Below are positions 6,738 through 19,892 of a stretch of 64,000 bases of DNA, piece by piece. The stretch lies in the IMG/VR virus record IMGVR_UViG_3300027834_000005, positions 186,001 to 250,000 of that record. One strand, given 5' to 3'. The notes under the pieces were generated by a model. That model had not been told where the DNA came from and did not search any database. It saw nothing but the letters and a program-made list of their open reading frames with translations. How positions within the stretch are numbered: the first letter of the stretch is position 1; every line of letters starts with the position of its first letter. The position numbers and the translations under genes are program-made.

Positions 6738-6804
6738 ATGCGCCCTCAGAGACTAAATCAATACGATCTTCGGATCTTAATGATTTGATCTTTGATCAAC
6801 AAGT

Positions 6805-7712
6805 TTAAGGATGTATAATCCTACAGCCGTAGTAATGCGGGGAAGGGCGGATCTACTAACAGACCGTCACCAGTTAACCTTTGGTTTTCGGGTAAATTAT
6901 GCAAGCCGAGTTACCTGTGACTTCGTACAAACGGAGAACATGGTGTAAGCATCAGGGGTAAAATGAGATCAGGGCAACGCTGAGATCTTAGTCGGAGATG
7001 AGAATTTCCTTCACTCATACGCCTTATCGGGCAGATGTGATACCAGCAGTGACAAAGGGTAGGGTAATTGTTTGAGTCAGTGATGACAAGAGCTTTTATT
7101 CATTCTAGAGTGATCCTTCGGGTGACCTTGTTAGATGAACAGGTGTTAAAACTTGGGAGTCTTGAAAGAACGTACGGATTAGCCTCATCGGGTGAAAGTA
7201 CATAGAGATGTTGTGTATTCTGTCGCTAGAAATAGTTATGGAGCATTGTCAGCACACGTCTTGGTTAGATACAACTTAACGGTTTAGCTCAGTTGGTAGA
7301 GCGCTTGATTCAGACTCAAGAGGTCGGTGGTTCAAATCCATTACTCGTTTACTTAATTAAAGTAAAAAAAACGCAAAGTTGTTGACGGCATAGAAGAGAA
7401 AATATCGTAATCCCGTGCATCCTCGGATGAACACGTGGTCAAAGAGAACCTGCAAAGTGATCTTTGGTTTGAAGGATTCTGCACTTTGGGCTGCAACCCT
7501 TAACTGCCTGCGAAGGTAGAAGGAAAGAAGAATTCAGAGTATCTCTATGTGACAGTGGAACCGCCTTTCCACTTAAAATAAGGCCGATATGGTAAGATAC
7601 TGGGATGGACCTACGGGTTGTCTCAGTGGATAAGTTCTTAACCGTGCATGAGCAATGTACGAGGTACGGGAACGTAAAGACTTACCGATTGTACGTATAA
7701 TCTCAACGTATT
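6805..7712 (+). ncRNA. GOLLD-like giant structured RNA (~900 nt) with an embedded tRNA-like domain
   Basis: No ORF of 60 aa or more in any frame; many GNRA/UUCG-capped hairpins; long-range pairing GGTAAG/CTTACC near the 3' end; next to a tRNA cluster; ends TAATCTCAACGTA-T-run. Boundaries are approximate. Confidence 0.6.
7278..7350 (+). tRNA. tRNA-like element (anticodon CAG, short variable loop, no CCA) inside the giant ncRNA
   Basis: AACGGTT-TAGCTCAGTTGGTAGAGC-CTTGA TTCAGAC TCAAG-GGTGG TTCAAAT CCATT-ACTCGTT. Confidence 0.6.
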
Positions 7713-7720
7713 TTTATTTT

Positions 7721-7861
7721 AAAGTTCTTAGTGGTTGGTATTTGAAGAGAAAGGGGATAGGTTAGCTGTCGCAGTGATATGCGGTCCTCAATAAATATCA
7801 TAAACGTCCTACATCTGCTAGGATTTGGCCAACACTGATAGTATCAACCCCTAAGAATTTT
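7721..7861 (+). ncRNA. Putative ~140 nt structured RNA closed by a long terminal stem
   Basis: AAAGTTCTTAGTGGTTGGTAT pairs with GTATCAACCCCTAAGAATTT. Confidence 0.45.
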
Positions 7862-8081
7862 TTACTTTATGTGGATATCGTTATGATAATTACAGCTAGA
7901 GATTTAATGCCGAAGTACGGTGATGACGAAGATGATCTGTCATTATCAGACGTAGGACGTATAGAATCTCAGATAGAGAGTAACTTAGCGCAGTCTAAGC
8001 AAATACTTGAAGATTTGGACACCGTTAAAGAGGAATTAAACTTCCTTCGACGTATAGTTCGCTTCTTACGTTAGATAATAT

Positions 8082-8157
8082 GCTTGCGTAGCTCAGTTGG
8101 TAGAGCAGCTCACTTGTAATGAGCAGGTCACAGGTTCGACTCCTGCCGCAAGCTCCA
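8082..8157 (+). tRNA. tRNA-Thr(TGT)
   Basis: Cloverleaf, GCTCA CTTGTAA TGAGC, CCA end. Confidence 0.95.
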
Positions 8158-8164
8158 TTTTTAC

Positions 8165-8249
8165 GGTGCCCATCTGGGGAAAGGCTTGAGTTGAAACATA
8201 CTCGGTAGGATACTTCGGTATCTGAAGTGGGGATCAGGTCCCGCCACCA
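8165..8249 (+). ncRNA. tRNA-like RNA ending in CCA (non-canonical)
   Basis: GGTG../..CACCA ends, internal hairpins GAGT..ACTC and GGATAC TTCG GTATCT, T-arm-like GTGGG..CCCGC. Confidence 0.4.
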
Positions 8250-8258
8250 TTTTTTAAT

Positions 8259-8333
8259 TCCACAATAGCTCAGCGGTAGAGTAGGTGACTGTTAATCACT
8301 TGGTCCTTGGTTCGATCCCAAGTTGTGGAGCCA
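8259..8333 (+). tRNA. tRNA-Asn(GTT)
   Basis: Cloverleaf, GGTGA CTGTTAA TCACT, CCA. Confidence 0.95.
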
Positions 8334-8350
8334 TTTTTAGAAGGTGTTAT

Positions 8351-8587
8351 ATGACAAGTTATAGCGAACTTAGCGATGTAGCACTTAGTGCCAAAATAAT
8401 GGAACTTGAGTATGACTTACGTAGAGCAAAAGCTGTGCAGAATCGCAGAGTTGGTAGTGCAACGTGGGAATGTGAAGAGTGCGGGTATAGACATACGGAT
8501 GCGGACATAGTAATATCTCATCTTGAGACGGTCCATAAATATCCACGTGAAGATGCGAACTTAAGTACTATTAGGGTACATTCATAA
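8351..8587 (+). CDS. Small C2H2 zinc-finger-like protein
   Basis: CEECG...HLETVH; AAGGTG SD before ATG 8351. Confidence 0.55.
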   Translation: MTSYSELSDVALSAKIMELEYDLRRAKAVQNRRVGSATWECEECGYRHTDADIVISHLETVHKYPREDANLSTIRVHS

Positions 8588-8610
8588 AAGAATTAGTAGA
8601 AAATAAATAT

Positions 8611-8685
8611 GCGGGTGTAACTCAGCGGTAGAGTGTGTGGTTTCCAACCATTTCGTCGCAGGTTCGATCCCTGTCACCCGCTCCA
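8611..8685 (+). tRNA. tRNA-Gly(TCC)
   Basis: GCGGGTG acceptor, TTTCCAA loop, TCCA end. Confidence 0.9.
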
Positions 8686-8699
8686 AATTAAGTATGGGC

Positions 8700-8730
8700 A
8701 GAGAGAGTTCGAACCTCTCCACCCGCTCCA
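8700..8730 (+). pseudogene. 3' remnant of a tRNA (T-arm plus acceptor strand)
   Basis: GAGAG TTCGAAC CTCTC CACCCGCTCCA repeats the 3' end of the tRNA-Gly just upstream. Confidence 0.6.
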
Positions 8731-8752
8731 AATTAAAATACACGGATGTATC

Positions 8753-9100
8753 ATGGACACAGTTAATATTAATCGTTTAGAACTACTAGAAATCGTTAAA
8801 GCGAATCTAGAAACCCACAAGACAGATATTTTATCTGCTAAAACCGCACGTTTAGCACAGTACAAAGCTGATGTGGCTAAGGCGTTAGATGATCCAGAAG
8901 GATTACGGGAAATAACTGTTCCTAAAGTGCCAGATAACACTACTGAGTATGAGAGTACAGTTCGTAAATTAGAATTATCGGTAGATGACGTGATTGCATT
9001 AGAATCACATGAGTTTGACAACTATGTGATGGATAAATGGCACAGTACGCGTTTGTTAAAAGGTATGTTGAACACCTATAGTGCTTCGGGTATGCTTTAA
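8753..9100 (+). CDS. Hypothetical phage protein
   Basis: ORF from ATG 8753 (MDTVNINRLELL...). Confidence 0.65.
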   Translation: MDTVNINRLELLEIVKANLETHKTDILSAKTARLAQYKADVAKALDDPEGLREITVPKVPDNTTEYESTVRKLELSVDDVIALESHEFDNYVMDKWHSTRLLKGMLNTYSASGML

Positions 9101-9104
9101 TAGC

Positions 9105-9566
9105 ATGAAGAGTTTATTATTTGTCTTACTGCTGACATTTAGTGGCATAACAAATGCATCGTATCTGCTTATGCCAATCGATGGTGTGTATGATGGAGAT
9201 ACGATATATACTCACTTTCATGAGAAGAGAATACCTCCACCACTTAATGTATTGCGTGTTAGGGTTCAACACATAGATACACCTGAAATGCCTGCGGCGT
9301 CTTATGTTGAGACTGGCAAGCTTAATAAGGCTAAGTGTGACGCAGAAGCATTACTTGCAACACAAGCTAAGTTTGCATTAGTTAAGATGATTGGTGATTC
9401 AACTACCATGAAGTTAACTAATTTTGACTGGGGTTCATACCCTAGGAGAATTGTAGCCGACGTCAAGATTAATGGTCAAGACGTAGGACAGTTTCTGATA
9501 AATAACGGATATGCCGTCTACGATGATGGCAAAACATCAGTTGATAATAAAGACTGGTGTAAATGA
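9105..9566 (+). CDS. Thermonuclease (SNase) family protein with signal peptide
   Basis: VYDGDTI, RVQHIDTPE and DVGQFLINNGYA motifs. Confidence 0.85.
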   Translation: MKSLLFVLLLTFSGITNASYLLMPIDGVYDGDTIYTHFHEKRIPPPLNVLRVRVQHIDTPEMPAASYVETGKLNKAKCDAEALLATQAKFALVKMIGDSTTMKLTNFDWGSYPRRIVADVKINGQDVGQFLINNGYAVYDDGKTSVDNKDWCK

Positions 9567-9572
9567 TTTAAT

Positions 9573-9650
9573 TGCGCGGTAGTGAAGCTTGGTCATCACG
9601 CAAGGCTCATAACCTTGAGATCGGCGGTTCGAATCCGTCCTGCGCTACCA
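9573..9650 (+). tRNA. tRNA-Met(CAT), initiator-like
   Basis: CAAGG CTCATAA CCTTG; 1:72 mismatch; CCA. Confidence 0.85.
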
Positions 9651-9671
9651 AATTCTATTAGGTCTTAAGAC

Positions 9672-10175
9672 ATGAAAATAGATATTATTGACTTCGAGGC
9701 GTCCGCCTTGCAGTATCCAAGTTTCCCAATACAAGTTGCTATTATAAAAGAAGACGGTTCTACCTTTGATAGGTATATTCGTCCGTCTGATAAATGGATA
9801 GAGACGTATAATTGGGACCCTGCCTCACAAGACATACATAATATACCACTTAATACGTTACTGGACATTGGTAAGCCTTTAAAAGAAGTCGCTGAAGACC
9901 TTAATGAATTCGTCGGTGATGGTACTGTATATTGTGACGGTGGATTGTACGATATTGGCTGGTGTAACGAACTCTATGAAGCGGCTAAAATTAAAAGAAC
10001 ATTTAGGCTAGGTAGTGTCACTGAATTGTATGAGTATCATGCCGGTGATAAACAGTTATGGGAAGTAAAACAGATAGCTGCTGATAAACTAAAACTAAAA
10101 GAGCATGATGCTCTTAATGACGTCAAGATCATACAATTGGCTGTTAATTGGAAGAGAAATAACTACATACCATGA
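9672..10175 (+). CDS. DEDDh 3'-5' exonuclease-like protein
   Basis: IIDFEAS, D..YD..W and HDALND motifs. Confidence 0.75.
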   Translation: MKIDIIDFEASALQYPSFPIQVAIIKEDGSTFDRYIRPSDKWIETYNWDPASQDIHNIPLNTLLDIGKPLKEVAEDLNEFVGDGTVYCDGGLYDIGWCNELYEAAKIKRTFRLGSVTELYEYHAGDKQLWEVKQIAADKLKLKEHDALNDVKIIQLAVNWKRNNYIP

Positions 10176-10436
10176 AGCAGATATTGACAGTGGAGAATAT
10201 ACAGACATTGACGGTTTCTGAGGACGAAATTCTCATAGTTACCGTTGATTGTACTGATATGCCTAGGAGTAAACAAGCGGCATATATGGAAGACGTATTG
10301 AAGTTCGTTAAAGAACAAGTTGATTGTAAGGTAATAGTATTTCCGTCAACCATTAAGGTATCAAAAATAAGTACTGATGCCGATAACTAATGACTTTTAT
10401 TGATAAATAGAACTAAAATATAGGTTCTATTTTATA

Positions 10437-11279
10437 ATGAAACTACAACATATCATTGAAAGCCTTAACGAAGCTCCAATTGGAGATTTCGAAACATCAG
10501 GCGACTTTTCTAAAAATTCATCCTTTAGAAAACCTAAAGATCGTAAGATCATAAACAATCCTAAATCTCAAGAAGTATTCAGAAAGAAATTCAGTAATAC
10601 TGACCACGACTTTAATTTTTATTTCGTAAATAGCCCTGCTGCCAACCGTCATACTGAAGTTGGTATGGTTGATATGAATTGGGTACAAGAAAATTTAGGC
10701 GAAGAAGTTGCCAATATGGTAAATCATGACGGCGATGCAATTAGTATTATCTTTACTAACAATAAAGGTGAAAAAGGTGTTACTATGACACCATGGATTG
10801 TAGCACATAGAATAGCGCATGTACTTACACGTCCAAATGTTAATCCACCGAAGATTTTAGAAGCCTACAGCGACTTCATTAAGCAAATGTCTTTGGAAGT
10901 GTTCCCTTTGTACGGGATTAATGACTTCCCTAGAAATTGGCGCGGATTCATAAGTGATCAACGAGCCATGAAGATTATGCAGTTGTTTATGTATGCAGCG
11001 GGAGACTTTAGATCCGCAAGAGATAAGAACCTGAATAACGGCGCAGAAGCATTCCATGAGATGTTCGCTCAATACCTAACGACTGGTAAAGTGAAGCTTA
11101 AAGAAATACCAAAACAATTCGGAAATAGAAATTTTAGTGCGTCGTTACAAGGTAACGGACAAATACAAGATTTCGAAATGGTAGAATACAACCACGCTCT
11201 ACAGTCAGCAGCTGACACGTTAGAGTGGGGATTAGAAGGTGGGCTAGGTGCCTATTATAATAAAGTATTCGTAATGTAA
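10437..11279 (+). CDS. Late-expressed hypothetical protein (possible head-packaged protein)
   Basis: TGATAAATA upstream; N-terminal MKLQHIIESLNE; HE..AQY metalloprotease-like motif. Confidence 0.55.
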   Translation: MKLQHIIESLNEAPIGDFETSGDFSKNSSFRKPKDRKIINNPKSQEVFRKKFSNTDHDFNFYFVNSPAANRHTEVGMVDMNWVQENLGEEVANMVNHDGDAISIIFTNNKGEKGVTMTPWIVAHRIAHVLTRPNVNPPKILEAYSDFIKQMSLEVFPLYGINDFPRNWRGFISDQRAMKIMQLFMYAAGDFRSARDKNLNNGAEAFHEMFAQYLTTGKVKLKEIPKQFGNRNFSASLQGNGQIQDFEMVEYNHALQSAADTLEWGLEGGLGAYYNKVFVM

Positions 11280-11289
11280 GATATATGGC

Positions 11290-11410
11290 TTGACAGGGAC
11301 GTGATATAGTGATATAATTCGTCCCATATTAAGAAATACTCATTTTGAGATAAAAACTTCTGAAAATGATAAATAAAAGTATTGACAAAGTGTTTAAAGC
11401 ACTGTATAAT
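11290..11410 (+). promoter_or_regulatory. Promoter stack for tRNA cluster 1 (two sigma70 promoters plus a late TGATAAATA)
   Basis: TTGACA-N17-TATAAT at 11290-11318 and 11382-11410; TGATAAATA ~11367. Confidence 0.8.
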
Positions 11411-11448
11411 ACTCAGTATAAATTAAATGACTAATAAGGTCTAGTAAA

Positions 11449-11607
11449 ATGAAAACAATTATCGCAACTACAATCGCTTCCAGTATGCTCTTATCTGCAT
11501 CACAGCGCCAAGTTGTGTCTGAACAATTGTTATCATCTCAGTCGGTTGAACGCCAACTGGAAAGACAGCCTTACGGGTTAATGAGTATCGAAGAGGATTT
11601 TATCTAA
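11449..11607 (+). CDS. Leader peptide 1 of tRNA-cluster attenuator (52 aa, S/L/Q/R/E-rich)
   Basis: MKTIIATTIASSMLLSASQRQVVSEQLLSSQSVERQLERQPYGLMSIEEDFI*; TAAGGT SD; below ORF-track cutoff. Confidence 0.85.
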   Translation: MKTIIATTIASSMLLSASQRQVVSEQLLSSQSVERQLERQPYGLMSIEEDFI

Positions 11608-11635
11608 GTATAGATTAAAATCACAGAGAATTCAG

Positions 11636-11669
11636 AAACCCGATCTAGGCAACTAAATCGGGTTTTTTT
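11636..11669 (+). terminator. Attenuator terminator 1 (alternative antiterminator 11574-11642)
   Basis: AAACCCGATCTAG GCAA CTAAATCGGGTTTTTTT; upstream CGGGTT (11574-79) is complementary to its 5' arm. Confidence 0.85.
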
Positions 11670-11697
11670 ATGCTCGAAGAAAAAGAAAAGAATTAAA

Positions 11698-11772
11698 GCA
11701 CCATTCGACTAGTGGCTAGGTCAACAGGTTTTCAACCTGCAGAAGGGGGATCGAAACCCCCATGGTGTACCA
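11698..11772 (+). tRNA. tRNA-Glu(TTC)
   Basis: ACAGG TTTTCAA CCTGC, CCA. Confidence 0.9.
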
Positions 11773-11777
11773 ACAAA

Positions 11778-11852
11778 TGGGGTGTGGCCAATAGGATAAG
11801 GCAACGGGCTTTGAACTCGTGATAGTGGGATCGTTACCCACCACCCTAGCCA
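11778..11852 (+). tRNA. tRNA-Gln(TTG)
   Basis: ACGGG CTTTGAA CTCGT, GCCA. Confidence 0.9.
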
Positions 11853-11952
11853 ATAAGGTAATAAAAGGTGAAAGATATGAACATGAATAAAGAGGTAAAT
11901 TTGGGGACGATTGTTCCCATAGCTATCCAGACAGCGACTACGACATTGTAAT

Positions 11953-12026
11953 CGCGGATTAGCTAAGTGGTATAGCCTCGCACTTTGACTGCGATGTCGA
12001 GGGTTCGATTCCCTCATCCGCTGCCA
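11953..12026 (+). tRNA. tRNA-Gln(TTG)
   Basis: TCGCA CTTTGAC TGCGA, GCCA. Confidence 0.9.
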
Positions 12027-12178
12027 CGAAAGAAGTAGAAATAAAAGTTGTAAAGAAGTAGAAAACGTGAGAAAATATAGAAGAACAGAGAAGCGGGAAG
12101 GAAATATAGGGCTGGCCTAAGAATCAGATTTGTGCAGTATTGATTGCCTCTCATTAATAAAATAATGAGGACAATATA

Positions 12179-12427
12179 ATGAAAAGTTTATTAAAGAGAC
12201 ATAGAGTAAGAGCGACATTTTATCACGTAGTAGCGATACTATTTGTTTTAAGTGCAGTATGCGCAGAGTCAGGTATTATAAGTATAACGGCTGGTTTCTG
12301 GATAGGAATAGTATTATTCTTTGCAGATTATATCGCAGAGATGTATGACCCGAATCCTGAGAATCCAGGTCCATGGTTTGAATCGCACTTTCATAGATTT
12401 TATGATGGTGACGAAGATGAAGAATAG
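12179..12427 (+). CDS. Small membrane protein
   Basis: Two hydrophobic segments; GAGG SD. Confidence 0.6.
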   Translation: MKSLLKRHRVRATFYHVVAILFVLSAVCAESGIISITAGFWIGIVLFFADYIAEMYDPNPENPGPWFESHFHRFYDGDEDEE

Positions 12428-12430
12428 AAT

Positions 12431-12507
12431 GCGACGGTGATCCAATTGGTAGAGGTGCTAGGTTCAAGTTCTAGTTGTTGAGGGTTCGACTCCCTCTCGT
12501 CGTACCA
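12431..12507 (+). tRNA. tRNA-Leu(CAA), short variable arm
   Basis: CTAGG TTCAAGT TCTAG, ACCA. Confidence 0.8.
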
Positions 12508-12688
12508 TATTAGGTGAGTATATGAAGAACAGAAACAAATGGCTACGTATACCAGAACATATTGAGAAAGAAAGAGTATACAGAGAGGCCGTAGCTCTAT
12601 TTGATCAGTTAGAAAAGAAGAACGGCGTGCTATCTACATCAGTAGCCACGTTAAGAGATAGATTGAAGAAAAGTTTTAAAGGTTAAAT

Positions 12689-12775
12689 GCGGGTGTGGCG
12701 AAGTTGGTATATGCAGCGGTTTTAGAAACCGTAGATCGGAAGATCGTGAGGGTTCGACTCCCTCCACCCGTACCA
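12689..12775 (+). tRNA. tRNA-Leu(TAG)
   Basis: GCGGT TTTAGAA ACCGT, long variable arm. Confidence 0.95.
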
Positions 12776-12790
12776 TATTGGAGAAAGAAG

Positions 12791-13126
12791 ATGGCACATT
12801 ATAGAAAGTTAGAAGTTGGTGGTATTAATTACCAATTTAATATCGGTAAACGTTATGTCGCCATCAAAGGTCCGAACGGAACAGAGCACGTAGAAAAAAG
12901 TGTTGTTGGGTTTGAAGTGCATGCCAGTGCTGCCGTTACGCCCAAGATGATCGCTGATCATATAAAGGGATGTAAAAAAGATGTCAGTGAGTACTTCCCG
13001 TCGTGCGGATGTGAAGGAGTAGAGAAGACACTAGTGGTTAATCCGTACGAAAGTGAAATTCGTGAAAAAACATATTATAACTATTGGTGTAAAAGTTGTT
13101 ATGAAAGTGTAGCGGATGATATTTAA
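12791..13126 (+). CDS. Hypothetical Cys-rich protein
   Basis: ATG 12791 after GGAG; CGC..CKSC motifs. Confidence 0.6.
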   Translation: MAHYRKLEVGGINYQFNIGKRYVAIKGPNGTEHVEKSVVGFEVHASAAVTPKMIADHIKGCKKDVSEYFPSCGCEGVEKTLVVNPYESEIREKTYYNYWCKSCYESVADDI

Positions 13127-13136
13127 AAGTTTTGAA

Positions 13137-13223
13137 GCCATGGTGGCGAAGCAGGAATATGCACCAGACTTAAAATCTGGCGGTCGAAAGATCATGCGGG
13201 TTCGATTCCCGCCCATGGCACCA
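13137..13223 (+). tRNA. tRNA-Leu(TAA)
   Basis: CCAGA CTTAAAA TCTGG, long variable arm. Confidence 0.95.
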
Positions 13224-13311
13224 AATACGTATAGCTGAGGATATAGCATGTTGTCTTCCAAGGCCTGAAAAGGTAGCGCAGCCAGAAGGTTAGGCATGCT
13301 GAGATTTTAAT

Positions 13312-13382
13312 ACGTCGGGCAGCGGATGCAAGAGAGATTACGAATCTTTCTGTCGGTGGTTCGAATCCACCTCGGCGTACCA
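13312..13382 (+). tRNA. tRNA-Arg(ACG) with reduced D-arm
   Basis: AGAGA TTACGAA TCTTT; intact T-arm and acceptor; D-arm only GCA-GCGGA-TGC. Confidence 0.7.
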
Positions 13383-13542
13383 ATTTTTACGGAGAGTTCC
13401 ATGGGAACAGTTATAGACCTAGAATCTTATAGAACATCAAGAATGAGTAAGATGGAATCTCTCAAATACACGGCAGAAAAAGCCAAAAGGCTAGCCGAAA
13501 GGATTGATAGGAAAATCGAGAAAATGAAGAAGTAAGTTTAAT

Positions 13543-13620
13543 GCACTTGTCGTCTAACTGGAATAGGATACCTGACTTTCAATCAGGGGAATGCGGGATC
13601 GAGGCCCGTCAAGTGTACCA
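13543..13620 (+). tRNA. tRNA-Glu(TTC)
   Basis: CCTGA CTTTCAA TCAGG. Confidence 0.9.
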
Positions 13621-13626
13621 TTTTAT

Positions 13627-13760
13627 GGGACTGGCTGAAGGCAGCTAAGGTAGAGGTTCGATTCCTCTTTTAAGTCTGGACAGACGGAGGTTCGATTCCT
13701 CATTACGTCTACTGGTATACTTGCGAGTGTAGATGGGTTCGACTCCCGACAGTTCCAACA
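13627..13760 (+). ncRNA. tRNA-like RNA with three T-loop hairpins
   Basis: GGGACTG/CAGTTCC closing stem; GAGGTTCGATTCCTC twice and GGGTTCGACTCCC. Confidence 0.6.
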
Positions 13761-13864
13761 TTTTAAGGTAGCAAATACCAAACGCTACCTTGGTGAAAAG
13801 GTTGGCCTAGTAGTAAGAGGTGGTACTCTTGTGAAAAGCTGGCCTTAGTAACCTAAATTTTAAT

Positions 13865-13941
13865 GCGTCCTTGGCCAAATTGGATAAGGCACCGGATTTC
13901 TACTCCGACGATTCCAGATTCGAATTCTGGAGGGCGCACCA
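13865..13941 (+). tRNA. tRNA-Arg(TCT)
   Basis: CCGGA TTTCTAC TCCGA, ACCA. Confidence 0.9.
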
Positions 13942-14122
13942 AACATACTGTTAATGGGAAATACTAGTTTCAACCATTGACAGGCAGGGCTGAACTCGCA
14001 AGGTTCTTTCCTTTACTTGCTTAGGCATCAGACAGCGAATCGTGGATGGGTCTGAAGGGTGGCTACGCGGAGTAGTAGTGAGATAAATGATTTCTAAATT
14101 CTCACGGCAGGTAAAAAACACT

Positions 14123-14212
14123 AGCAGATAATCCATGATGGTGATTGGGTGCGCTTGGAAAGCGTTGCGAGGGCTGATACCCCTTTCGGATCGATACCGA
14201 TGTCTGCTACCA
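14123..14212 (+). tRNA. tRNA-Ser(GGA)
   Basis: GCGC TTGGAAA GCGT, long variable arm. Confidence 0.8.
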
Positions 14213-14220
14213 AATTTAAT

Positions 14221-14295
14221 GCTCCTGTCGTCTAATGGCTAGGATATCGCGTTCTCAGCGCGGGGAAGACGGATCGATACCGTCCAGGAGTACCA
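14221..14295 (+). tRNA. tRNA-Glu(CTC)
   Basis: TCGCG TTCTCAG CGCGG. Confidence 0.9.
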
Positions 14296-14301
14296 ATTTA
14301 T

Positions 14302-14390
14302 AGTAGGTTAATTCGTCGGGGACGGACACGGCTTTGAATACCGTTGGAGGGTTAATAGCCCTTGGGGATCGATACCTCAATCTACTGCCA
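14302..14390 (+). tRNA. tRNA-Ser(TGA)
   Basis: ACGGC TTTGAAT ACCGT, long variable arm, GCCA. Confidence 0.8.
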
Positions 14391-14576
14391 ATTAAGGAAA
14401 TATTATGTTTGCCAGATTACAACGTAAATATTTTAAGTATAGGGCCAGACTAGCTCAAGATGATATGTATATGACTATGGGCATGTTCAATGTAAAAGAA
14501 GAGCAGTTGTATGGAAACTATTCATATAATATAAGTAAGGCTAAACGTGATTACTATCTCACTAGGGCCAAGTGGG

Positions 14577-14915
14577 CTATCTAAGTTCGATTGACTTGGA
14601 TTGTTCTTGATCTAAAACATAACCTTGTAGATTGTCTACTTTGTTCTGTACTGCTTGATGTACGCGATGGTAACCGTCTATTAACATAAGACCTTTTTCC
14701 AACTCTACGATAAGCACAGGAGAGTTCTTCTCAGACCCCATGGCGTGGTCGTGATCGACTCTTACAAAACCTAGCATACTAGCTAGGTCTGAGGTGTTAA
14801 ATGTCTCTACGGGAACTCCGTGAGCCTTTACAAGGTCATATCCCTTGTCTACGTCCCATGTCTTTCCGAGCATGGTAAACGTTTCACCTTTGTTGTTAAA
14901 TTCTAATAGTCTCAT
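14577..14915 (-). CDS. ParB/Srx-like N-terminal domain protein, late promoter
   Basis: LIDGYHRV motif; MRLLEF start; TGATAAATA upstream on the minus strand. Confidence 0.6.
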   Translation of the reverse strand: MRLLEFNNKGETFTMLGKTWDVDKGYDLVKAHGVPVETFNTSDLASMLGFVRVDHDHAMGSEKNSPVLIVELEKGLMLIDGYHRVHQAVQNKVDNLQGYVLDQEQSKSIELR

Positions 14916-14934
14916 GACTATATTTATCAGTTAC

Positions 14935-15023
14935 GGTAGATAATCCTGACAGGGTCAGGCACTGTTTCGAAAACAGTAGGAGGACTTGCGTGCCTTGGGG
15001 ATCGTTACCTCTATCTACCTCCA
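14935..15023 (+). tRNA. tRNA-Ser(CGA)
   Basis: ACTGT TTCGAAA ACAGT, long variable arm. Confidence 0.85.
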
Positions 15024-15084
15024 TTCAAGCGTTGACATTAAGTTTAAAGCGGCATAGTATACATTTTTCACTGAGGTCACAGCC

Positions 15085-15417
15085 ATGTTTGAAGTAAGAA
15101 AAGAGTTGATTGATTATAAGGATGGTGATAAGCTCATCTGTGTCATTGGTGAAACGCTAAAGGCCGGAGAGTTGAGATTTCCAACTTATAAGGCTGGTGA
15201 CGTCGCGGTAGCTTACGGAGAACCGTATATTAATGCTGATGGTGCCGAATTCATTAAAGTGGTAGAATCTAGTATTATGACAGGTGACCCAATGGAACCG
15301 AGTTCTAGGTTCCTCGCAAACTTTAACGGTAAGTCTGGTAATTATCTTTTTGTGATTGAGAATAAATTAACAGACGAAGATCGATTCCATGGTAAACTGA
15401 TTGGGTGGAAAGTATGA
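15085..15417 (+). CDS. Hypothetical protein with C-terminal EEExFxxxLxG-type motif
   Basis: Ends TDEDRFHGKLIGWKV. Confidence 0.65.
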   Translation: MFEVRKELIDYKDGDKLICVIGETLKAGELRFPTYKAGDVAVAYGEPYINADGAEFIKVVESSIMTGDPMEPSSRFLANFNGKSGNYLFVIENKLTDEDRFHGKLIGWKV

Positions 15418-15998
15418 ACGAGCTAAACGCGATAAAGATCAAAAAAGATTTTAATATGGGTAGCCTAAGTCCATCATGTATACCTTGGAAAATACACGTA
15501 GGAAGCACGTACCATATAGAGCGTAGAGACGTAGGTAAGTATGTGTTGAGTAGTTATCGTTTTGATAATACAGATCGACGGGAAGCGGTGACCTATCTTT
15601 TAGAACGAGACTTAAACGTATTGTTTGAAGAAGAAGATGTTTTTATGTCAATGATAATGATGGATAATCGCAAAGACGAAGGTAAATTTGCGACTAGGGG
15701 CGTATAATGAGTTTTGCAGGCATTGGCCAGTTCAGAAAAAATCTTGACGCTCTTATGGATTCAGACGCATTTAAGAATGCTAATGAAGGTGAACGTTTGA
15801 GAATGGGCGGCATGCTAGTGAGATCTACCGGCGCTAAGTTAGACAAAAAGAAAACGAGTACCTTGCATCCTATGCACCCAAATAATATTATAAAGAAATA
15901 ACTGGAAAAATAGTTGAATGAATGTGTGAGAGAAAAAATTAGTCCGTGTGACAACCTAGTTTATAAATAGTATAAACGCATTAAAAGGGCATACACAC

Positions 15999-16955
15999 AT
16001 GGATATTCAATATTTGAAAGGACTTATCCTAGCATTAGAAGAAACGTACAGCACTACTCAAACTGTAGATAGAGATCAATTATGCTATGACGTTGTCATG
16101 TTAGACGCTATGACAAAAGCTAATAGAGGTCTGAAGGATGTTATTAAAAAGTATAGTAGTATGCTTATCGTATTAGAGAATCGTGAAAGAACAAAAACGT
16201 ACAAAAATAGACTAGAGCAATTATATGATGGTGTTGGCGTGTACGAAGCCAGTGTTATTACGGCGAGAGCTAAAGTGTTATGTGAAGAATATAAGCAGGA
16301 TAGTGAATTAGGTTTGTTAGCCACAGATAAGACTCTAGACGTGTCTATGCGAGACATAGTGCTTACTACCCAAGAAAAAATAATGAGAAATTTAGAACCT
16401 AAAGATTTCTTAGACGACACTGATATTGCGATAATTACTGACCCAGCTGTAGCCTCAAAAAATGAGAGCTTTAAGCAGAAGTCAGAAGAGCATGCTGCAG
16501 ACGTTAATAGTCAAGTGTGTAAAAACGCACAAGTATATTCTGAGAAGTTAGCCAGTGATATGTCGGTACAAGGTATTGACGTGGTAATTGAGGAAAGTGA
16601 ATTCAGTGTTATCAATCCAAGATACGACAGAGATATGTCTTCTCTACGTGGCAAAATAACTACCGCATCGGACGAAGATAGGATGGATCTAGAGAACGAA
16701 AGACAGCGCTATATGAATAGTACAGATAGAAGCTTGACTCTTAACGAGATATATAATAAGCTTCTTAACTTACGAGAAATACTTATTAGTCCTTCTGATT
16801 TTTCAGGGGTAGATGTCGATATGAAAGCAATTGACGCAATGAGGATTACATTTAGTAGTGGAGTTATGACTCCAGAAGAAACGGTTAGTATGAACGAAGA
16901 AGCATTAGAGATATTGGTGCGATACGGGATTTACGCTGATCGGTATGCCACTTAA
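15999..16955 (+). CDS. Late hypothetical protein
   Basis: 318 aa ORF preceded by TATAAATA (T4 late consensus) at ~15963. Confidence 0.65.
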   Translation: MDIQYLKGLILALEETYSTTQTVDRDQLCYDVVMLDAMTKANRGLKDVIKKYSSMLIVLENRERTKTYKNRLEQLYDGVGVYEASVITARAKVLCEEYKQDSELGLLATDKTLDVSMRDIVLTTQEKIMRNLEPKDFLDDTDIAIITDPAVASKNESFKQKSEEHAADVNSQVCKNAQVYSEKLASDMSVQGIDVVIEESEFSVINPRYDRDMSSLRGKITTASDEDRMDLENERQRYMNSTDRSLTLNEIYNKLLNLREILISPSDFSGVDVDMKAIDAMRITFSSGVMTPEETVSMNEEALEILVRYGIYADRYAT

Positions 16956-16973
16956 ATTAAAGTGATAAAGGTG

Positions 16974-17097
16974 TTGACAACTACTACATAACGTTGTATA
17001 ATAGTCGGCATCAAATGAACGAAAACTTGTTTTAGACAAAAAAAGTTCAAAAATGATAAATAAAAGTATTGACAACGATTGTAATACGTTGTATAAT
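16974..17097 (+). promoter_or_regulatory. Promoter stack for tRNA cluster 2 (two sigma70 promoters plus a late TGATAAATA)
   Basis: TTGACA-N17-TATAAT at 16974-17002 and 17069-17097; AAAATGATAAATAAAAGTATTGACAA is shared with the cluster 1 stack. Confidence 0.8.
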
Positions 17098-17140
17098 ACT
17101 CAGCATAACTTAACTAGATAATATTTCAAGGTGAAATAAC

Positions 17141-17317
17141 ATGAAAACATTGACTGCAAACATCAATACAACAACAAAGCATATTGCTATTAATAGCACG
17201 GCTGCGTGGTGTGTGATTGCGCCTATGTTTAGTGTGATAGCGGATGATAGTAATTTTAATGGCTATCCGAAGCATCAGAATCGGGTTAGAATGAAAGGTG
17301 AGACGAGAGGAATGTAA
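17141..17317 (+). CDS. Leader peptide 2 of tRNA-cluster attenuator (58 aa)
   Basis: MKTLTANINTTTKHIAINSTAAWCVIAPMFSVIADDSNFNGYPKHQNRVRMKGETRGM*; AAGGTG SD. Confidence 0.85.
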   Translation: MKTLTANINTTTKHIAINSTAAWCVIAPMFSVIADDSNFNGYPKHQNRVRMKGETRGM

Positions 17318-17341
17318 ATTCCAAAACTCATAAAGAATTCG

Positions 17342-17374
17342 AAACCCGACCTAGGAAACTACGTCGGGTTTTTT
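17342..17374 (+). terminator. Attenuator terminator 2 (alternative antiterminator 17281-17349)
   Basis: AAACCCGACCTAG GAAA CTACGTCGGGTTTTTT; upstream TCGGGTT (17281-87) is complementary to its 5' arm. Confidence 0.85.
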
Positions 17375-17496
17375 CGTTTCAGGGGTTCGTAAAATCCCAG
17401 ACTACTTTACTCCAGCAGTAAAGCGTTATTTGAAAATTAGATTAGTAAATTGGAAAGCGGGGCATACCATGCCTCGCTATATAAACAAAAGAATTT

Positions 17497-17570
17497 GGGG
17501 CCATAGTATAATGGGATTATGCCTGCCTTGCACGTAGATGATCGGGGTTCGACTCCCCGTGGCTCCACCA
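17497..17570 (+). tRNA. tRNA-Ala(TGC)
   Basis: GGGGCCA acceptor with G3:U70, CTTGCAC loop. Confidence 0.9.
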
Positions 17571-17577
17571 AATTTGT

Positions 17578-17653
17578 GGTCATGTAGCTCAGAGGCAGAG
17601 CACTCCCTTCATACGGGACGAGGTCGGGATCTCAGAATTCCCCATGACTACCA
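17578..17653 (+). tRNA. tRNA-Met(CAT) (elongator, or lysidine Ile2)
   Basis: CTCCC TTCATAC GGGAC, ACCA. Confidence 0.8.
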
Positions 17654-17659
17654 AATTTA

Positions 17660-17690
17660 GCCTCCATAGTGTAGCGGTAGCACAGCTTTA
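17660..17690 (+). pseudogene. 5' half of a tRNA truncated at the HNH cassette
   Basis: GCCTCCA TA GTGT AGCGGTA GCAC; no matching 3' half nearby. Confidence 0.55.
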
Positions 17691-17729
17691 ATAGTGTATG
17701 AGTAGGAAAATGATAAATACTTATAAACT

Positions 17730-18230
17730 ATGGTGAGCAATATGAAAAAAGAGTATTTGAAAAATCTAGTGGGTGAGGGTAAAACTCTGAAAGAGTTGTC
17801 GGAGGCCACTGGTAAAGGACAGACTACGGTAGTCTATTGGATGAAGAAGTACGATCTTAAGACTTCAAATGCGGAAAAAGGCCATGCCACTACTGCTTTT
17901 GTATGTTTATGTGGGGAAGATGATGAGGCTAAATTCTATAAGTCTACTCCGTCTATGTGTAAGCAGTGTCACGGCGAATATTGTGTTGAAAGATATGCCA
18001 AAGTAAAGAAGAAGGCGGTGGAATATAAGGGTGGTTCTTGTGAGAATTGCGGCTATGATAGACATAATGGCTGTTTAGAATTTCATCACCTTGACCCTAC
18101 GCAGAAAGATCCTAATTTTGCTTACTCTAGGGGTTGGGCGTGGGAACGTTTAGCTAAGGAACTAGATAAGTGCGTAATGTTATGCGCAAATTGCCATCGT
18201 GAAGTTCACGGCGGCGTGTTAAAACTTTAA
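17730..18230 (+). mobile_element. Free-standing HNH homing endonuclease (HTH + Zn + HNH)
   Basis: YKGGSCENCGY..LEFHHLDP..ELDKCVMLCANCHREVH; own TGATAAATA promoter. Confidence 0.85.
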
Positions 18231-18232
18231 AT

Positions 18233-18324
18233 GCTTCGATAGCTCAATTGGTAGAGCGACGGATTTATATCCCGTGCAGTAGATAACTGGTCGGTTGGGG
18301 GTTCGAATCCCCCTCGAAGTACCA
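18233..18324 (+). tRNA. tRNA-Ile(TAT) with extended variable arm
   Basis: GCTTCGA/TCGAAGT acceptor; ACGGA TTTATAT CCCGT. Confidence 0.7.
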
Positions 18325-18328
18325 ATTT

Positions 18329-18400
18329 ACGCCAATGGATTTATACCTCGTAACCACAGATAATGGGCTGTCGCAGGTTCGAATCCTGCTAGGTGTACCA
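18329..18400 (+). pseudogene. D-armless degenerate tRNA-Ile(TAT)-like copy
   Basis: GATTTATACC, same AGATAA extra arm, intact T-arm and ACCA, no D-arm. Confidence 0.5.
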
Positions 18401-18405
18401 TTTTA

Positions 18406-18482
18406 GCTCTTGAAACATTTATATGGATGATGTCCCGTTTTGTAATCGGGGGAACGCGGATCGTTACCGTGCTGGAGCACCA
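18406..18482 (+). tRNA. tRNA-Thr(TGT), atypical
   Basis: CCCGT TTTGTAA TCGGG; GATCGTTA T-loop. Confidence 0.7.
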
Positions 18483-18633
18483 AATAGAAAAAGTTGTAAA
18501 AAAAAGATTGACTCCTTATGAAATAGATGATATAATGATAAGGCGCTTACAACAACAGTTAGACATCTGCATTAGGTCTGTATCCCTAATCGAAGAAGCA
18601 GCAGTGAAGGTCTGAAGATACAGTGATTTTTTA

Positions 18634-18721
18634 GGTAGATTGGCAGAGTGGTGAATGCAGCGGGTTGCTAACTCGTGATCCTTAACGGGGTCCATAGGTT
18701 CGAATCCTATATCTACCGCCA
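18634..18721 (+). tRNA. tRNA-Ser(GCT)
   Basis: GCGGG TTGCTAA CTCGT, long variable arm. Confidence 0.95.
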
Positions 18722-18727
18722 TGTTTT

Positions 18728-18802
18728 ACACGGGTAGCTCAGAGGCAGAGCGGTGGTGTTACATACCATAGGTCGAGATTTCGAAATTCTCTCCGTGTAC
18801 CA
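18728..18802 (+). tRNA. tRNA-Val(TAC)
   Basis: GTGGT GTTACAT ACCAT. Confidence 0.9.
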
Positions 18803-18809
18803 ATTTTTT

Positions 18810-18884
18810 GCACTTGTAGCTGAGATGGATTAGCGACGGATTGAAGTCCCGTATAGAAAGGATCGTTACCTTTCAAGTGCACCA
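18810..18884 (+). tRNA. tRNA-Phe(GAA)
   Basis: ACGGA TTGAAGT CCCGT. Confidence 0.85.
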
Positions 18885-19024
18885 AATTTCGCTAGTACTG
18901 GGTTCTGCCCAAGGATCGCAACCTTGGCTTAGTATTAGCGCAATATTTTGACACTACTGTCCCATGGGGGATATCCTCGAAAGAGGCAGCATGCTCTAAG
19001 TGTGCGGTGTCAAAAACTAATCAG

Positions 19025-19076
19025 CTGGCCTGATGAGTCCTAACAGGGACGAAACGAGAGTAAATCTCGTCGCCAG
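19025..19076 (+). ncRNA. Type I hammerhead ribozyme; predicted cleavage after C19071 at tRNA-Tyr +1
   Basis: CTGGC-CTGATGA-GTCC..GGAC-GAAA-CGAGA..TCTCG-TC-GCCAG: complete core and three stems. Confidence 0.95.
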
Positions 19077-19154
19077 AGTAGCAGCGTAATTGGTAGCGCC
19101 CCGCACTGTAAATGCGCATTCCCGTTGTTGGTTCGAATCCAACCTTTGGCACCA
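19072..19154 (+). tRNA. tRNA-Tyr(GTA)
   Basis: GCCAGAG/CTTTGGC acceptor; CCGCA CTGTAAA TGCGC. Confidence 0.85.
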
Positions 19155-19174
19155 AATTAAAAAAAACTAATCAG

Positions 19175-19225
19175 TCCGCCTGATGAGTCTTATTAGAGAC
19201 GAAACATCTTACGAGATGTCGCGGG
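19175..19225 (+). ncRNA. Type I hammerhead ribozyme; predicted cleavage after C19220 at tRNA-Tyr +1
   Basis: TCCGC-CTGATGA-GTCT..AGAC-GAAA-CATCT TACG AGATG-TC-GCGGG. Confidence 0.95.
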
Positions 19226-19303
19226 AGACGTACCACTGGAAGGTATATCGGGCTGTAACCCCGACGCGAAAGCATATAGGTTCGAGTCCTATCTCCCGTA
19301 CCA
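19221..19303 (+). tRNA. tRNA-Tyr(GTA)
   Basis: GCGGGAG/CTCCCGT acceptor; TCGGG CTGTAAC CCCGA. Confidence 0.85.
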
Positions 19304-19345
19304 AATTACATAGGTAAGTAATAGCCTGACATATTACAAAGTTTT

Positions 19346-19421
19346 GGACCCTTAGCTCAATCGGGAGAGCACCGAGCCGATAACTCGGAGGTAGTTGGAT
19401 CGAAACCAACAGGGTCTACCA
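19346..19421 (+). tRNA. tRNA-Ile(GAT)
   Basis: CCGAG CCGATAA CTCGG. Confidence 0.9.
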
Positions 19422-19428
19422 ATTTAAT

Positions 19429-19505
19429 TCCGTGGTGGAGCAGAGAGGTAATGCGCTTGGCTGTTAACCAAGATTTCGCTGGTTCGATCCCAGCCCACGG
19501 AGCCA
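19429..19505 (+). tRNA. tRNA-Asn(GTT)
   Basis: CTTGG CTGTTAA CCAAG. Confidence 0.9.
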
Positions 19506-19546
19506 ACATGAGGAATGTTCACCTCTATAAAAACGAGTGAAGTTTA

Positions 19547-19621
19547 GGTGCTATAGCTCAGAGGCAGAGCAAACCGTTGTCTGCGGTAAGGTCGGGATTT
19601 CGAAATTCCCTAGCATCGCCA
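19547..19621 (+). tRNA. tRNA-Asp(GTC)
   Basis: ACCG TTGTCTG CGGT, GCCA. Confidence 0.8.
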
Positions 19622-19627
19622 ATTTTT

Positions 19628-19703
19628 ACCAGCGTAGCTCAATCGGGAGAGCGGGTCCCTGTCAAGGATCAGGTAGCGAGATCGAAACTCGTCGTTGGTG
19701 CCA
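19628..19703 (+). tRNA. tRNA-Asp(GTC)
   Basis: GGTCC CTGTCAA GGATC, GCCA. Confidence 0.9.
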
Positions 19704-19709
19704 ATTTAT

Positions 19710-19801
19710 GTATCAGAGCAAGTATGGACGTCCATACACTGTGCTGTCTCAAGTCGTCAAGTCATGGGATCGGGTGGTTCAATACCACTGGTGATGCGCC
19801 A
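19710..19801 (+). ncRNA. tRNA-like RNA / degenerate tRNA
   Basis: GTATCA/TGATGC stem, T-arm GTGG TTCAATA CCAC, GCCA end, non-canonical middle. Confidence 0.4.
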
Positions 19802-19807
19802 ATTTAT

Positions 19808-19886
19808 CGGGATATAGCTCAGTCTGGTGTAGAGCGCATGCTTTGGAAGCTTGAGGCCGTAGGTTCGAATCCTACTATCCCGACCA
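19808..19886 (+). tRNA. tRNA-Pro(TGG)
   Basis: CGGGATA acceptor, TTTGGAA loop. Confidence 0.9.
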
Positions 19887-19892
19887 ATTTAA

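Follow-up and report, generated by a model that had tools for sequence, protein, structure and literature searches.

Putative codon-matched leader attenuators upstream of two tRNA gene arrays in a giant marine phage

A giant marine phage carries a short, putatively translated open reading frame (ORF) and a predicted intrinsic transcription terminator in front of each of its two tRNA gene arrays, and the regulatory part of each ORF is drawn largely from codons read by the tRNAs behind it. The phage therefore appears to switch on its tRNA genes when those codons become hard to translate, a form of control not described before for tRNA genes. Here we present the features of the two cassettes, together with their comparison to metagenomic relatives and to known attenuators. 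The window is a stretch of 64,000 nucleotides (positions 186,001 to 250,000 of IMG/VR record IMGVR_UViG_3300027834_000005); coordinates are those of the window and all features lie on the + strand. The evidence is entirely computational.

The first-pass annotation described the first cassette only, and its observation was confirmed, each element being found where it had been placed. Two sigma-70 promoters, both matching the consensus at 12 of 12 positions, are located at 11290-11318 and 11382-11410, with an A/T-rich upstream motif, AATGATAAATA, at 11365-11375. This motif plus the -35 box is shared with the second cassette and with the relatives L016, L020 and L147 (handles for metagenomic relatives), and in a longer form with a further relative, L023. 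A Shine-Dalgarno-like AAGG (11436-11439) lies 9 nt before the start codon of leader ORF 1 (11449-11607, 52 codons plus TAA), which is the only open frame there. The leader is followed by an intrinsic terminator (11636-11669) with a 9+3 bp stem (11636-11644 with 11657-11665), a GCAA loop and a run of seven Ts, at -14.5 to -16.9 kcal/mol; a simple terminator scan missed it because its loop rule is 3-8 nt.

The terminator ends 28 nt before array 1 (11698-15023), which comprises Glu ttc (two), Glu ctc, Gln ttg (two), Leu caa, tag and taa, Arg acg and tct, and Ser gga, tga and cga, plus small ORFs; no strong internal promoter was found. ARAGORN at default settings and Rfam found 9 of these 13 tRNAs. 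Arg(acg), Ser(gga), Ser(tga) and Ser(cga) appeared only at relaxed thresholds, along with a doubtful 14th, Ser(cga) at 13625-13709. In relatives, Ser(tga) and Ser(cga) were called at default settings in one or two, Arg(acg) at default settings in L016, and Ser(gga) again only at a relaxed threshold. All are Glu, Gln, Leu, Arg or Ser(TCN).

Regarding the codon content of leader 1, the regulatory tract comprises codons 11-40 (11479-11568). The count of 25 of 30 Ser, Leu, Gln, Arg or Glu codons given for this tract in the first-pass annotation is correct for amino acids, but by decoding class 24 of 30 are read by the downstream tRNAs (Ser TCN, Leu, Gln, Arg and Glu), because codon 12 is AGT. The genome background for these codons is 0.255, which gives a binomial p = 6e-10 for the tract. 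No 30-codon window in 325 long ORFs exceeds 20 such codons, and among 2,328 small ORFs in six frames only low-complexity off-frame ORFs tie with it.

A second, paralogous cassette at 16974-17374, which had not been mentioned previously, precedes the array for all other specificities. Its twin sigma-70 promoters (16974-17002 and 17069-17097) are again both 12/12 consensus. They are followed by leader ORF 2 (17141-17317, 58 codons plus TAA), by a predicted antiterminator (17281-17349) and by intrinsic terminator 2 (17342-17374). Array 2 (17497-25544) comprises Ala, a CAT tRNA, Ile tat and gat, Thr tgt and ggt, Ser gct, Val, Phe, Tyr (two), Asn, Asp (two), Pro (two), His, Lys (three), Cys, Met, Trp, and Gly tcc and gcc. 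ORFs and several further promoter-like sites are interspersed, so that leader 2 may gate only part of this array. Apart from a weaker terminator-like hairpin at ~6550-6600, upstream of the array-0 promoters, the only strong + strand intrinsic terminators of the tRNA region are those of the two cassettes. Each lies between perfect promoters and tRNAs, 28 nt (cassette 1) and about 120 nt (cassette 2) before the first tRNA, with no strong promoter-like site between.

Leader 2 is the complement of leader 1. Leu, Gln, Arg, Glu and Ser(TCN) codons make up 22 of 38 regulatory codons in leader 1, but 1 of 44 in leader 2 before the antiterminator (Fisher p = 7.5e-9), and of the 20,349 possible 5-of-21 splits of the code the real one separates the two leaders best. 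Codons 5-45 of leader 2 (17153-17275) contain no codon of this class (class 1), the longest such run among the 2,328 small ORFs of the genome, so that the two leaders are extremes in opposite directions, apart from the ties noted above. Leader 2 also samples all 16 specificities of its array, all 15 other amino acids plus Ser-AGY occurring within 44 codons, including single Trp, Cys, His and Tyr codons and an ATA codon. Ser is TCN in 7 of 9 cases in leader 1 and AGY in 3 of 3 in leader 2, matching Ser gga/tga/cga against Ser gct. When codons and anticodons were compared by us under strict wobble rules, 10 of 11 anticodons of array 1 and 18 of 19 of array 2 had a cognate codon in the regulatory part. 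The match is imperfect, however: the first 10 codons and 6 tract codons of leader 1 belong to the other class, and CTC, GCT and CCT have no strictly cognate phage tRNA. The non-matching Gln, Arg and Glu codons of leader 2 all lie beyond the point (codon ~44) at which a ribosome footprint would begin to block the predicted antiterminator.

Whether leader codon content follows the downstream anticodons in related phages had been proposed beforehand as a test, with a mismatch in homologous leaders counting against the interpretation. In three metagenomic relatives, L016, L020 and L147, the neighbouring proteins of which are 57-61% identical in the two cases measured, homologous leaders of 49-51 codons are present with 25 of 28 class-1 codons in the tract, each followed only by Glu, Gln, Leu, Arg and Ser(TCN) tRNAs. 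L020 has CGY codons in its leader, although no Arg(acg) was detected. The cassette-2 orthologue in L023 has a mixed leader (17 of 56 class-1 codons), and its contig ends after five tRNAs. Across six cassettes, ORFs of 49-58 codons are open in all, with AAGG (AGAG in L023) 8-9 nt upstream; AAGG is retained at the same distance in 5 of 6. In the two leaders of the window the other two frames are closed.

Between homologues the peptide is not conserved (S<->L, Q<->L and Q<->S changes occur), whereas the codon class, the open frame and the position of the stop codon are. Non-synonymous differences far outnumber synonymous ones, and the differences are spread evenly over codon positions. In 9 of 13 variable tract columns the change stays within the class, against 22% expected for random non-synonymous changes, and a ~95% strain shows TCT>TTA. 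No Pfam or PHROG match was obtained for the leaders, and searches of 5.8 and 1.8 billion proteins returned only the cassette leaders themselves.

It might be argued that the small ORFs are ordinary genes for small (perhaps membrane or secreted) peptides, each with its own promoter and terminator, that the tRNA arrays are expressed by constitutive leak through the terminator, and that the codon make-up is incidental. The N-termini (MKTIIATTIASSMLLSA...) look mildly signal-like, small ORFs are common between phage tRNAs (e.g., in T5), and direct evidence of regulation is lacking. We regard this as very unlikely, because it explains neither the complementary codon partition, nor the lack of peptide-level conservation, nor the stop codon at the hairpin apex in 6 of 6 cassettes or the GGGTT motif kept in three frames (described next), and because no protein family matches.

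Folding into two alternative states had likewise been named in advance as a check, and both states are predicted. Before the 3' arm of the terminator exists, the predicted fold of cassette 1 is a long imperfect hairpin (11574-11642), the antiterminator, in which CGGGTT (11574-11579) pairs with AACCCG (11637-11642) of the terminator's 5' arm and the stop codon is enclosed, as the first-pass annotation had claimed; the stop codon (11605-11607) sits at the apex (-21.6 kcal/mol, z = -5.2 against shuffles). In cassette 2 the closing helix pairs 17281-17287 with 17343-17349 and the stop codon (17315-17317) is in the apical loop (-22.9 kcal/mol, z = -6.2). In cassette 1 the hairpin is the minimum-energy state until the terminator's 3' arm has fully emerged. 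The hairpin is predicted in 6 of 6 cassettes at -15.5 to -23.3 kcal/mol (z = -2.9 to -6.2), although its interior sequence differs. The stop codon is at the apex in 6 of 6 (in the apical loop in five and straddling the last stem pair in cassette 1 of the window), and the GGGTT motif is kept in three different reading frames. The closing helix is invariant, so it is supported by conservation and not by covariation. For the terminators, 98% of cells are paired across the six cassettes, with 2 compensatory pairs. In a simulation of ribosome footprints, a ribosome with its A site beyond about codon 38 abolishes the antiterminator of cassette 1; the corresponding position in cassette 2 is codon ~44, and in both cases the matched tract ends where the footprint would begin to block the hairpin.

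A conserved small hairpin (11538-11560) lies inside the tract of leader 1, and its stem, CAGTTGG/CCAACTG, can be read in the L016, L020 and L147 sequences; it may be an RNA polymerase pause site, but this is inference. Another lies at about 17236-17276, likewise just upstream of the antiterminator strand. These hairpins do not compete with the antiterminator in the predicted folds, which leaves it undecided whether either of them serves as the protector or pause hairpin that gives termination when a leader is not translated. No anti-antiterminator was found, so untranslated RNA is predicted to read through.

The interpretation of the first-pass annotation, ribosome-mediated attenuation, is supported; it makes predictions that its author could not check, and these held. 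In our reading, which we consider probable, the cassettes are two paralogous ribosome-mediated transcription attenuators, each gating one phage tRNA array. Host RNA polymerase would start at the very strong twin promoters and transcribe the leader, and as the RNA emerges the long hairpin would zip up from the GGGTT motif, about 30 nt before the leader's stop codon, to the 5' arm of the terminator, which is thereby sequestered, so that transcription reads through into the tRNAs. A ribosome translating the leader without delay would unwind the whole 5' strand of the hairpin up to the stop codon at the apex, freeing the 3' strand to form the terminator. Shortage of any one of the charged tRNAs sampled by the leader would stall the ribosome before it reaches the hairpin and turn the matching array on, and once the pool is refilled the array would be shut off. 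In effect this would be an OR-gate sensor with negative feedback on tRNA supply. The parts, their order, the partition of codons and anticodons and the conservation of the architecture rest on sequence and statistics, whereas the two alternative folds and the ribosome positions deciding between them are predictions only; that the leaders are translated, that termination and read-through occur, and that the availability of tRNA rather than of amino acids is the signal, are inferences. No RNA run holding this uncultured phage was found, there are no expression, 3'-end or ribosome data, and neither translation of the leaders, termination nor a response of read-through to leader translation or charged-tRNA supply was shown. 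At equilibrium the full-length RNA prefers the terminator even with a stalled ribosome (P about 1.0 for cassette 2 and 0.1-0.9 for cassette 1); the switch must therefore be kinetic, as it is for trp.

Because the codon match shows only that translation of the leader matters, not how, and because equilibrium folding does not favor the antiterminator, other routes were considered, i.e., Rho-dependent termination on untranslated leader RNA, RNase processing or stability of the precursor, or a terminating ribosome physically blocking the terminator as in pyrBI. These are possible but unlikely. The stop codon is about 29 nt upstream of the terminator stem, beyond the reach of a ribosome footprint, which makes direct occlusion of the pyrBI type unlikely; the predicted alternative hairpin using the terminator's 5' arm is stable and conserved in all six cassettes; and the terminators are canonical and strong.

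Regarding the signal, a stalled ribosome cannot tell a missing tRNA from an uncharged one, and the architecture is that of the amino-acid attenuators, so that the phage might instead sense amino-acid starvation and tune tRNA output to the nutritional state of the host. This alternative, which differs from our reading only in the physiological signal, appears unlikely, because making more tRNA does not relieve amino-acid starvation, so the feedback would be futile, and because the leaders sample every specificity of the array and not one pathway's amino acids. In a broader view, which we consider only slightly more likely than not, the two complementary leaders together sample the whole genetic code, measure the capacity of the cell to decode every codon family, and switch on exactly the half of the tRNA repertoire that contains the limiting species. 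Such a device would keep tRNA supply steady through host shut-off and could also act as an inducible counter-measure to tRNA-cleaving host defences, although the link to anticodon nucleases, also suggested in the first-pass annotation, is speculation. Relatives with a single 'all-20-amino-acid' leader (L023) would be the undivided form.

Several known systems resemble the cassettes in part. In the tRNA gene regions of large phages such as T5, consensus sigma-70 promoters, small ORFs and homing (HNH) endonucleases likewise lie among many tRNA genes, but in T5 the tRNAs are not sorted into decoding classes, and none of the 23 tRNAs in the 20-kb stretch examined has a strong terminator within 200 nt upstream. 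T-box riboswitches also couple the state of a specific tRNA to read-through of a terminator in front of translation-related genes, but they bind uncharged tRNA directly through a specifier codon and need no ribosome, whereas here an ORF with a Shine-Dalgarno sequence is conserved. A covariance-model search of 6500-26500 against Rfam (E <= 1) listed only tRNA, a GOLLD-like RNA and chance hits, without a match to T-box or to the Trp, His, Leu, Thr or Phe leader families. The leader-peptide attenuators of amino-acid operons in enteric bacteria (trpL, hisL, leuL, thrL, ilvL, pheL) show the same order of parts, i.e., promoter, short translated ORF rich in regulatory codons, mutually exclusive antiterminator and terminator hairpins, and regulated genes, and in them a ribosome stall upstream favors the antiterminator; the multivalent thr and ilv leaders, which sense more than one amino acid, are closest. 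The phage cassettes differ in that the regulated genes are tRNAs and not enzymes, that the regulatory codons are a broad sample (5 or 16 specificities, mostly 1-7 codons each) rather than runs of one codon, that the leaders are long (49-58 codons), that no 1:2 'protector' hairpin competing with the antiterminator was found, so that the untranslated state is predicted to be ON, that the stop codon lies at the hairpin apex, and that the system is phage-encoded and duplicated, so that two leaders split the genetic code. The pheM leader of the E. coli pheST operon (phenylalanyl-tRNA synthetase) is a ribosome-mediated attenuator that controls a component of the translation machinery according to how well its own codons are decoded, but it controls a synthetase gene and senses one amino acid, whereas here the products are the tRNAs themselves and, in our reading, many codons are sensed.

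The window comprises bases 186001-250000 of a 347-kb IMG/VR virus record obtained from a marine metagenome, and strains of ~95% identity occur in marine-sediment runs. Contigs that carry homologues of its genes also encode T4-type capsid, sheath, gp32 and UvsX-like proteins. The genome contains 22 perfect sigma-70 consensus promoters, seven of which lie in the tRNA region. No cultured phage is close; DNA and protein searches of cultured phages with the cassette, the leaders and the neighbouring ORFs returned no relative. A permuted tmRNA with the tag peptide ANEELYAQAA is encoded at 43770-44138.

All elements listed in the first-pass annotation were found, and its observation is thus confirmed. 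Two promoters matching the consensus at 12 of 12 positions are located at 11290 and 11382, followed by an AAGG Shine-Dalgarno sequence, an ORF of 52 codons (11449-11607, leader 1) and a strong intrinsic terminator (11636-11669); the first tRNA starts 28 nt later. Nine tRNAs were detected by ARAGORN and Rfam at default thresholds, whereas Arg(acg), Ser(gga), Ser(tga) and Ser(cga) were added only at relaxed thresholds. Of these, Ser(tga) and Ser(cga) are called at default in relatives, and Arg(acg) in the relative L016 (see below). Every credible tRNA between 11698 and 15023 is specific for Glu, Gln, Leu, Arg or Ser(TCN). The count of 25 S, L, Q, R or E residues in codons 11-40 (30 codons) is correct for amino acids, whereas 24 of 30 codons belong to the decoding class of the array (class 1), because one Ser codon is AGT. 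The genome background for this class is 25.5%, and no 30-codon window in 325 long ORFs exceeds 20 such codons. tRNA-like debris lies between the tRNAs of array 1 (13625-13760 and 13941-14122), including three T-arm-like repeats (GGTTCGATTCC...) and yielding weak or conflicting ARAGORN calls; these may be decayed tRNA genes. A minus-strand ORF (14577-14915; phrog_17560, function unknown) is situated inside array 1, antisense to the tRNA transcript.

A second, paralogous cassette is not mentioned in the first-pass annotation. The terminator motif occurs exactly twice, both in the window and in the genome, and the second copy (17342-17374) is preceded by twin 12/12 promoters at 16974 and 17069, the same upstream motif, the same start (ATGAAAACA) and an ORF of 58 codons (17141-17317, leader 2). 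The array behind it (17497-25544) holds tRNAs for Ala, Met/Ile(CAT), Ile, Thr, Ser(AGY), Val, Phe, Tyr, Asn, Asp, Pro, His, Lys, Cys, Trp and Gly, and none for Glu, Gln, Leu, Arg or Ser(TCN). Leader 2 is the complement of leader 1: codons 5-45 contain no L, Q, R, E or S(TCN) codon, and its three Ser codons are all AGY. All 16 specificities of array 2 occur within the first 44 codons, including single Trp, Cys, His and Tyr codons as well as an ATA codon that matches a tRNA-Ile(tat) (18233-18324), which at 92 nt is unusually long for an Ile tRNA. A conserved GC-rich hairpin, which may be a processing site although its role is not known, lies between terminator 2 and tRNA-Ala (17430-17496, GCGGGGCATACCATGCCTCGC; 13225-13305 in the related contig L023, GTGGGGCCTTCGGGTCCCAC). 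Array 2 also contains promoter-like sites, an HNH homing-endonuclease ORF (17730-18230) and four tandem paralogous ORF-sized repeats (20546-22011), which are 417-477 bp apart and about 70% identical.

Regarding the whole leaders, class-1 codons account for 27 of 52 codons in leader 1 and 6 of 58 in leader 2 (Fisher p = 2.4e-6). Regarding only the parts upstream of the antiterminator, the counts are 22 of 38 and 1 of 44 (p = 7.5e-9). Among all 20,349 ways to choose 5 of 21 specificities, the real tRNA split separates the two regulatory parts best (rank 1). Among 2,328 small ORFs in six frames, leader 2 has the longest class-1-free run, whereas leader 1 ties for the second-highest class-1 density (24 of 30; maximum 25), the other top-scoring ORFs being low-complexity off-frame ORFs. 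Of 24,273 windows of 44 residues in the phage's proteins, none holds all 15 class-2 amino acids with at most one L, Q, R or E. The codon match is nevertheless imperfect with respect to the first ten codons of leader 1, the codons CTC, GCT and CCT, and the CGY codons of the relative L020. No Rfam leader or T-box model matches the cassettes, and no protein family matches the leaders.

SNase-like and RNase T-like (DEDD exonuclease) ORFs lie between the tRNA groups (9081-10175). Homologues of the RNase T-like ORF (9672-10175) led to two metagenomic contigs that carry cassette 1, L016 and L020, in which the gene is syntenic with the cassette; it might act in tRNA 3' processing. A profile search with the leaders led to a third contig, L147. 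Whether the codon content of leaders in related phages follows the anticodons downstream had been put forward in advance as a check, with a lack of any such match counting against the interpretation. Each of the three contigs has the promoter motif, the Shine-Dalgarno sequence, a leader of 49-51 codons with 25 of 28 class-1 codons in the tract, the terminator, and then 11-13 tRNAs that are only Glu, Gln, Leu, Arg or Ser(TCN). The neighbouring proteins are only 57-61% identical, and the upstream gene differs in L147; only four independent lineages carry cassette 1. Between homologues the leader differs mostly by non-synonymous changes spread over all codon positions, so the peptide is not under purifying selection. 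Even so, 9 of 13 variable tract columns change within the class (S<->L in six columns, five of them purely S<->L, Q<->L, Q<->S twice, and E<->Q), whereas the other four toggle into or out of it; random non-synonymous single-base changes would stay in class 22% of the time. The ~95% strain shows A6T, S16L (TCT>TTA), Y42D and three synonymous changes, all of which preserve the class.

One orthologue of cassette 2 was found, in the contig L023 (12990-13160). Its leader of 56 codons holds all 20 amino acids within its first 46 codons, with 17 class-1 codons in total; only 3% of 56-residue windows in this phage's proteins hold all 20. It precedes Ala, Ile, Lys, Val and Asn tRNAs, after which the contig ends, and the contig could not be extended because both contigs end in the tRNA array. 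That phage lacks cassette 1 at the syntenic place. This fits an undivided 'pan-codon' leader, which may act as a sensor, but does not establish it. The ArdC-like neighbour led to unrelated viruses without tRNAs.

Further searches did not reveal additional cassettes. Pattern scans of IMG/VR for the promoter motif, the terminator and the leader start found nothing, and a pattern scan of metagenomes, which was not exhaustive, yielded mostly chance AT-rich matches, only the phage's own contigs carrying the cassette. The upstream 280-aa ORF has many homologues, but in those fetched they are not next to tRNA arrays. Contigs with more distant homologues of the RNase T-like ORF (L012-L015) have scattered tRNAs and no cassette; two of them (L012 and L013) also carry tmRNA genes. 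An exhaustive profile search for leader homologues returned only the three leaders already known.

Folding of the leader RNA into two alternative states had likewise been named beforehand as a test. The full-length free RNA folds with the terminator. Before the 3' arm exists, however, the 5' arm of the terminator is predicted to pair with (N)CGGGTT inside the ORF, which closes a long imperfect hairpin, the antiterminator. This hairpin is found in six of six cassettes at -15.5 to -23.3 kcal/mol (compared with -11.9 to -16.3 kcal/mol for the terminators), with z-scores of -2.9 to -6.2 against shuffles, although the interior sequences differ. In all six the stop codon lies at the apex of the hairpin, in or at the apical loop. 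The GGGTT motif is kept in three different reading frames (GGG TTN, CGG GTT and AAG GGT TTA), which points to an RNA-level constraint. The terminator shows two compensatory pairs, whereas the closing helix of the antiterminator is invariant and thus offers conservation but no covariation. In a ribosome-footprint simulation the antiterminator is abolished once the A site passes codon ~38 in cassette 1 or ~44 in cassette 2, which is where the matched tracts end; the five class-1 codons of leader 2 other than Leu-4 (TTG) lie beyond that point. Along the growing transcript the antiterminator is the minimum-energy state until the 3' arm has fully emerged. Equilibrium folding with a stalled ribosome was not retained as the test of the switch, since it favours the terminator, as it also would for trp, and was replaced by folding of the nascent RNA; the switch must therefore be kinetic, as in trp. 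In the tRNA region these two are the only comparably strong + strand intrinsic terminators, apart from a weaker terminator-like hairpin at ~6550-6600, and no promoter was found between either one and its first tRNA. A third, leaderless tRNA group (Leu cag, Thr, Asn, Gly, Met) is headed by three perfect sigma-70 promoters (6456, 6624 and 6709) and a long non-coding stretch (region 6456-7709), within which lies a GOLLD-like RNA at 7205-7709 (Rfam RF02032, 122 bits, below the gathering score of 150, E = 3e-32) that contains tRNA-Leu(cag) at 7278-7350.

We propose the following mechanism. By default the hairpin would form and the polymerase would read into the tRNAs, whereas a ribosome that runs unhindered to the stop codon would open the 5' strand and free the 3' strand, whereupon the terminator would form. 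Shortage of any charged tRNA sampled by the tract would stall the ribosome upstream and keep the array on, and refilling the pool would shut it off. While the elements and their codon content were observed in the sequence, the two folds are predicted and the response to tRNA supply is inferred, and there are no expression data; within these limits, independent in-silico tests support the interpretation of the first-pass annotation as ribosome-mediated attenuation. Direct occlusion of the terminator by the ribosome, as in pyrBI, was set aside as unlikely because the stop codon is about 29 nt from the terminator stem. Phage tRNA genes are usually treated as constitutively expressed cargo that fixes codon-usage mismatch or replaces tRNAs lost to host shut-off or to anticodon nucleases. 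A sensor that reads decoding capacity and feeds back on tRNA transcription would be the first attenuator known to control tRNA genes; no report of leader-peptide control of tRNA genes was found in the literature, older subscription papers not being covered. It would also show that leader-peptide attenuation can be generalised from one amino acid to a whole set of codons, and would give a compact, portable part (about 380 bp) that reports which tRNAs are limiting in a cell, which is useful for studying tRNA-targeting immunity and for synthetic biology.

A T5-like precedent was considered but not found in the T5 record: the tRNA region of T5, of which a 20-kb stretch was examined, has promoters and small ORFs, but no such terminators and no sorting of tRNAs. 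The logic of the cassettes is that of the leader-peptide attenuators, especially the multivalent thr and ilv leaders and pheM of pheST. They differ from these in the regulated genes, which are tRNAs, in the broad codon sampling, in that no protector hairpin competing with the antiterminator was found in the predicted folds, in the stop codon at the apex, and in the duplication that splits the code between two sensors.
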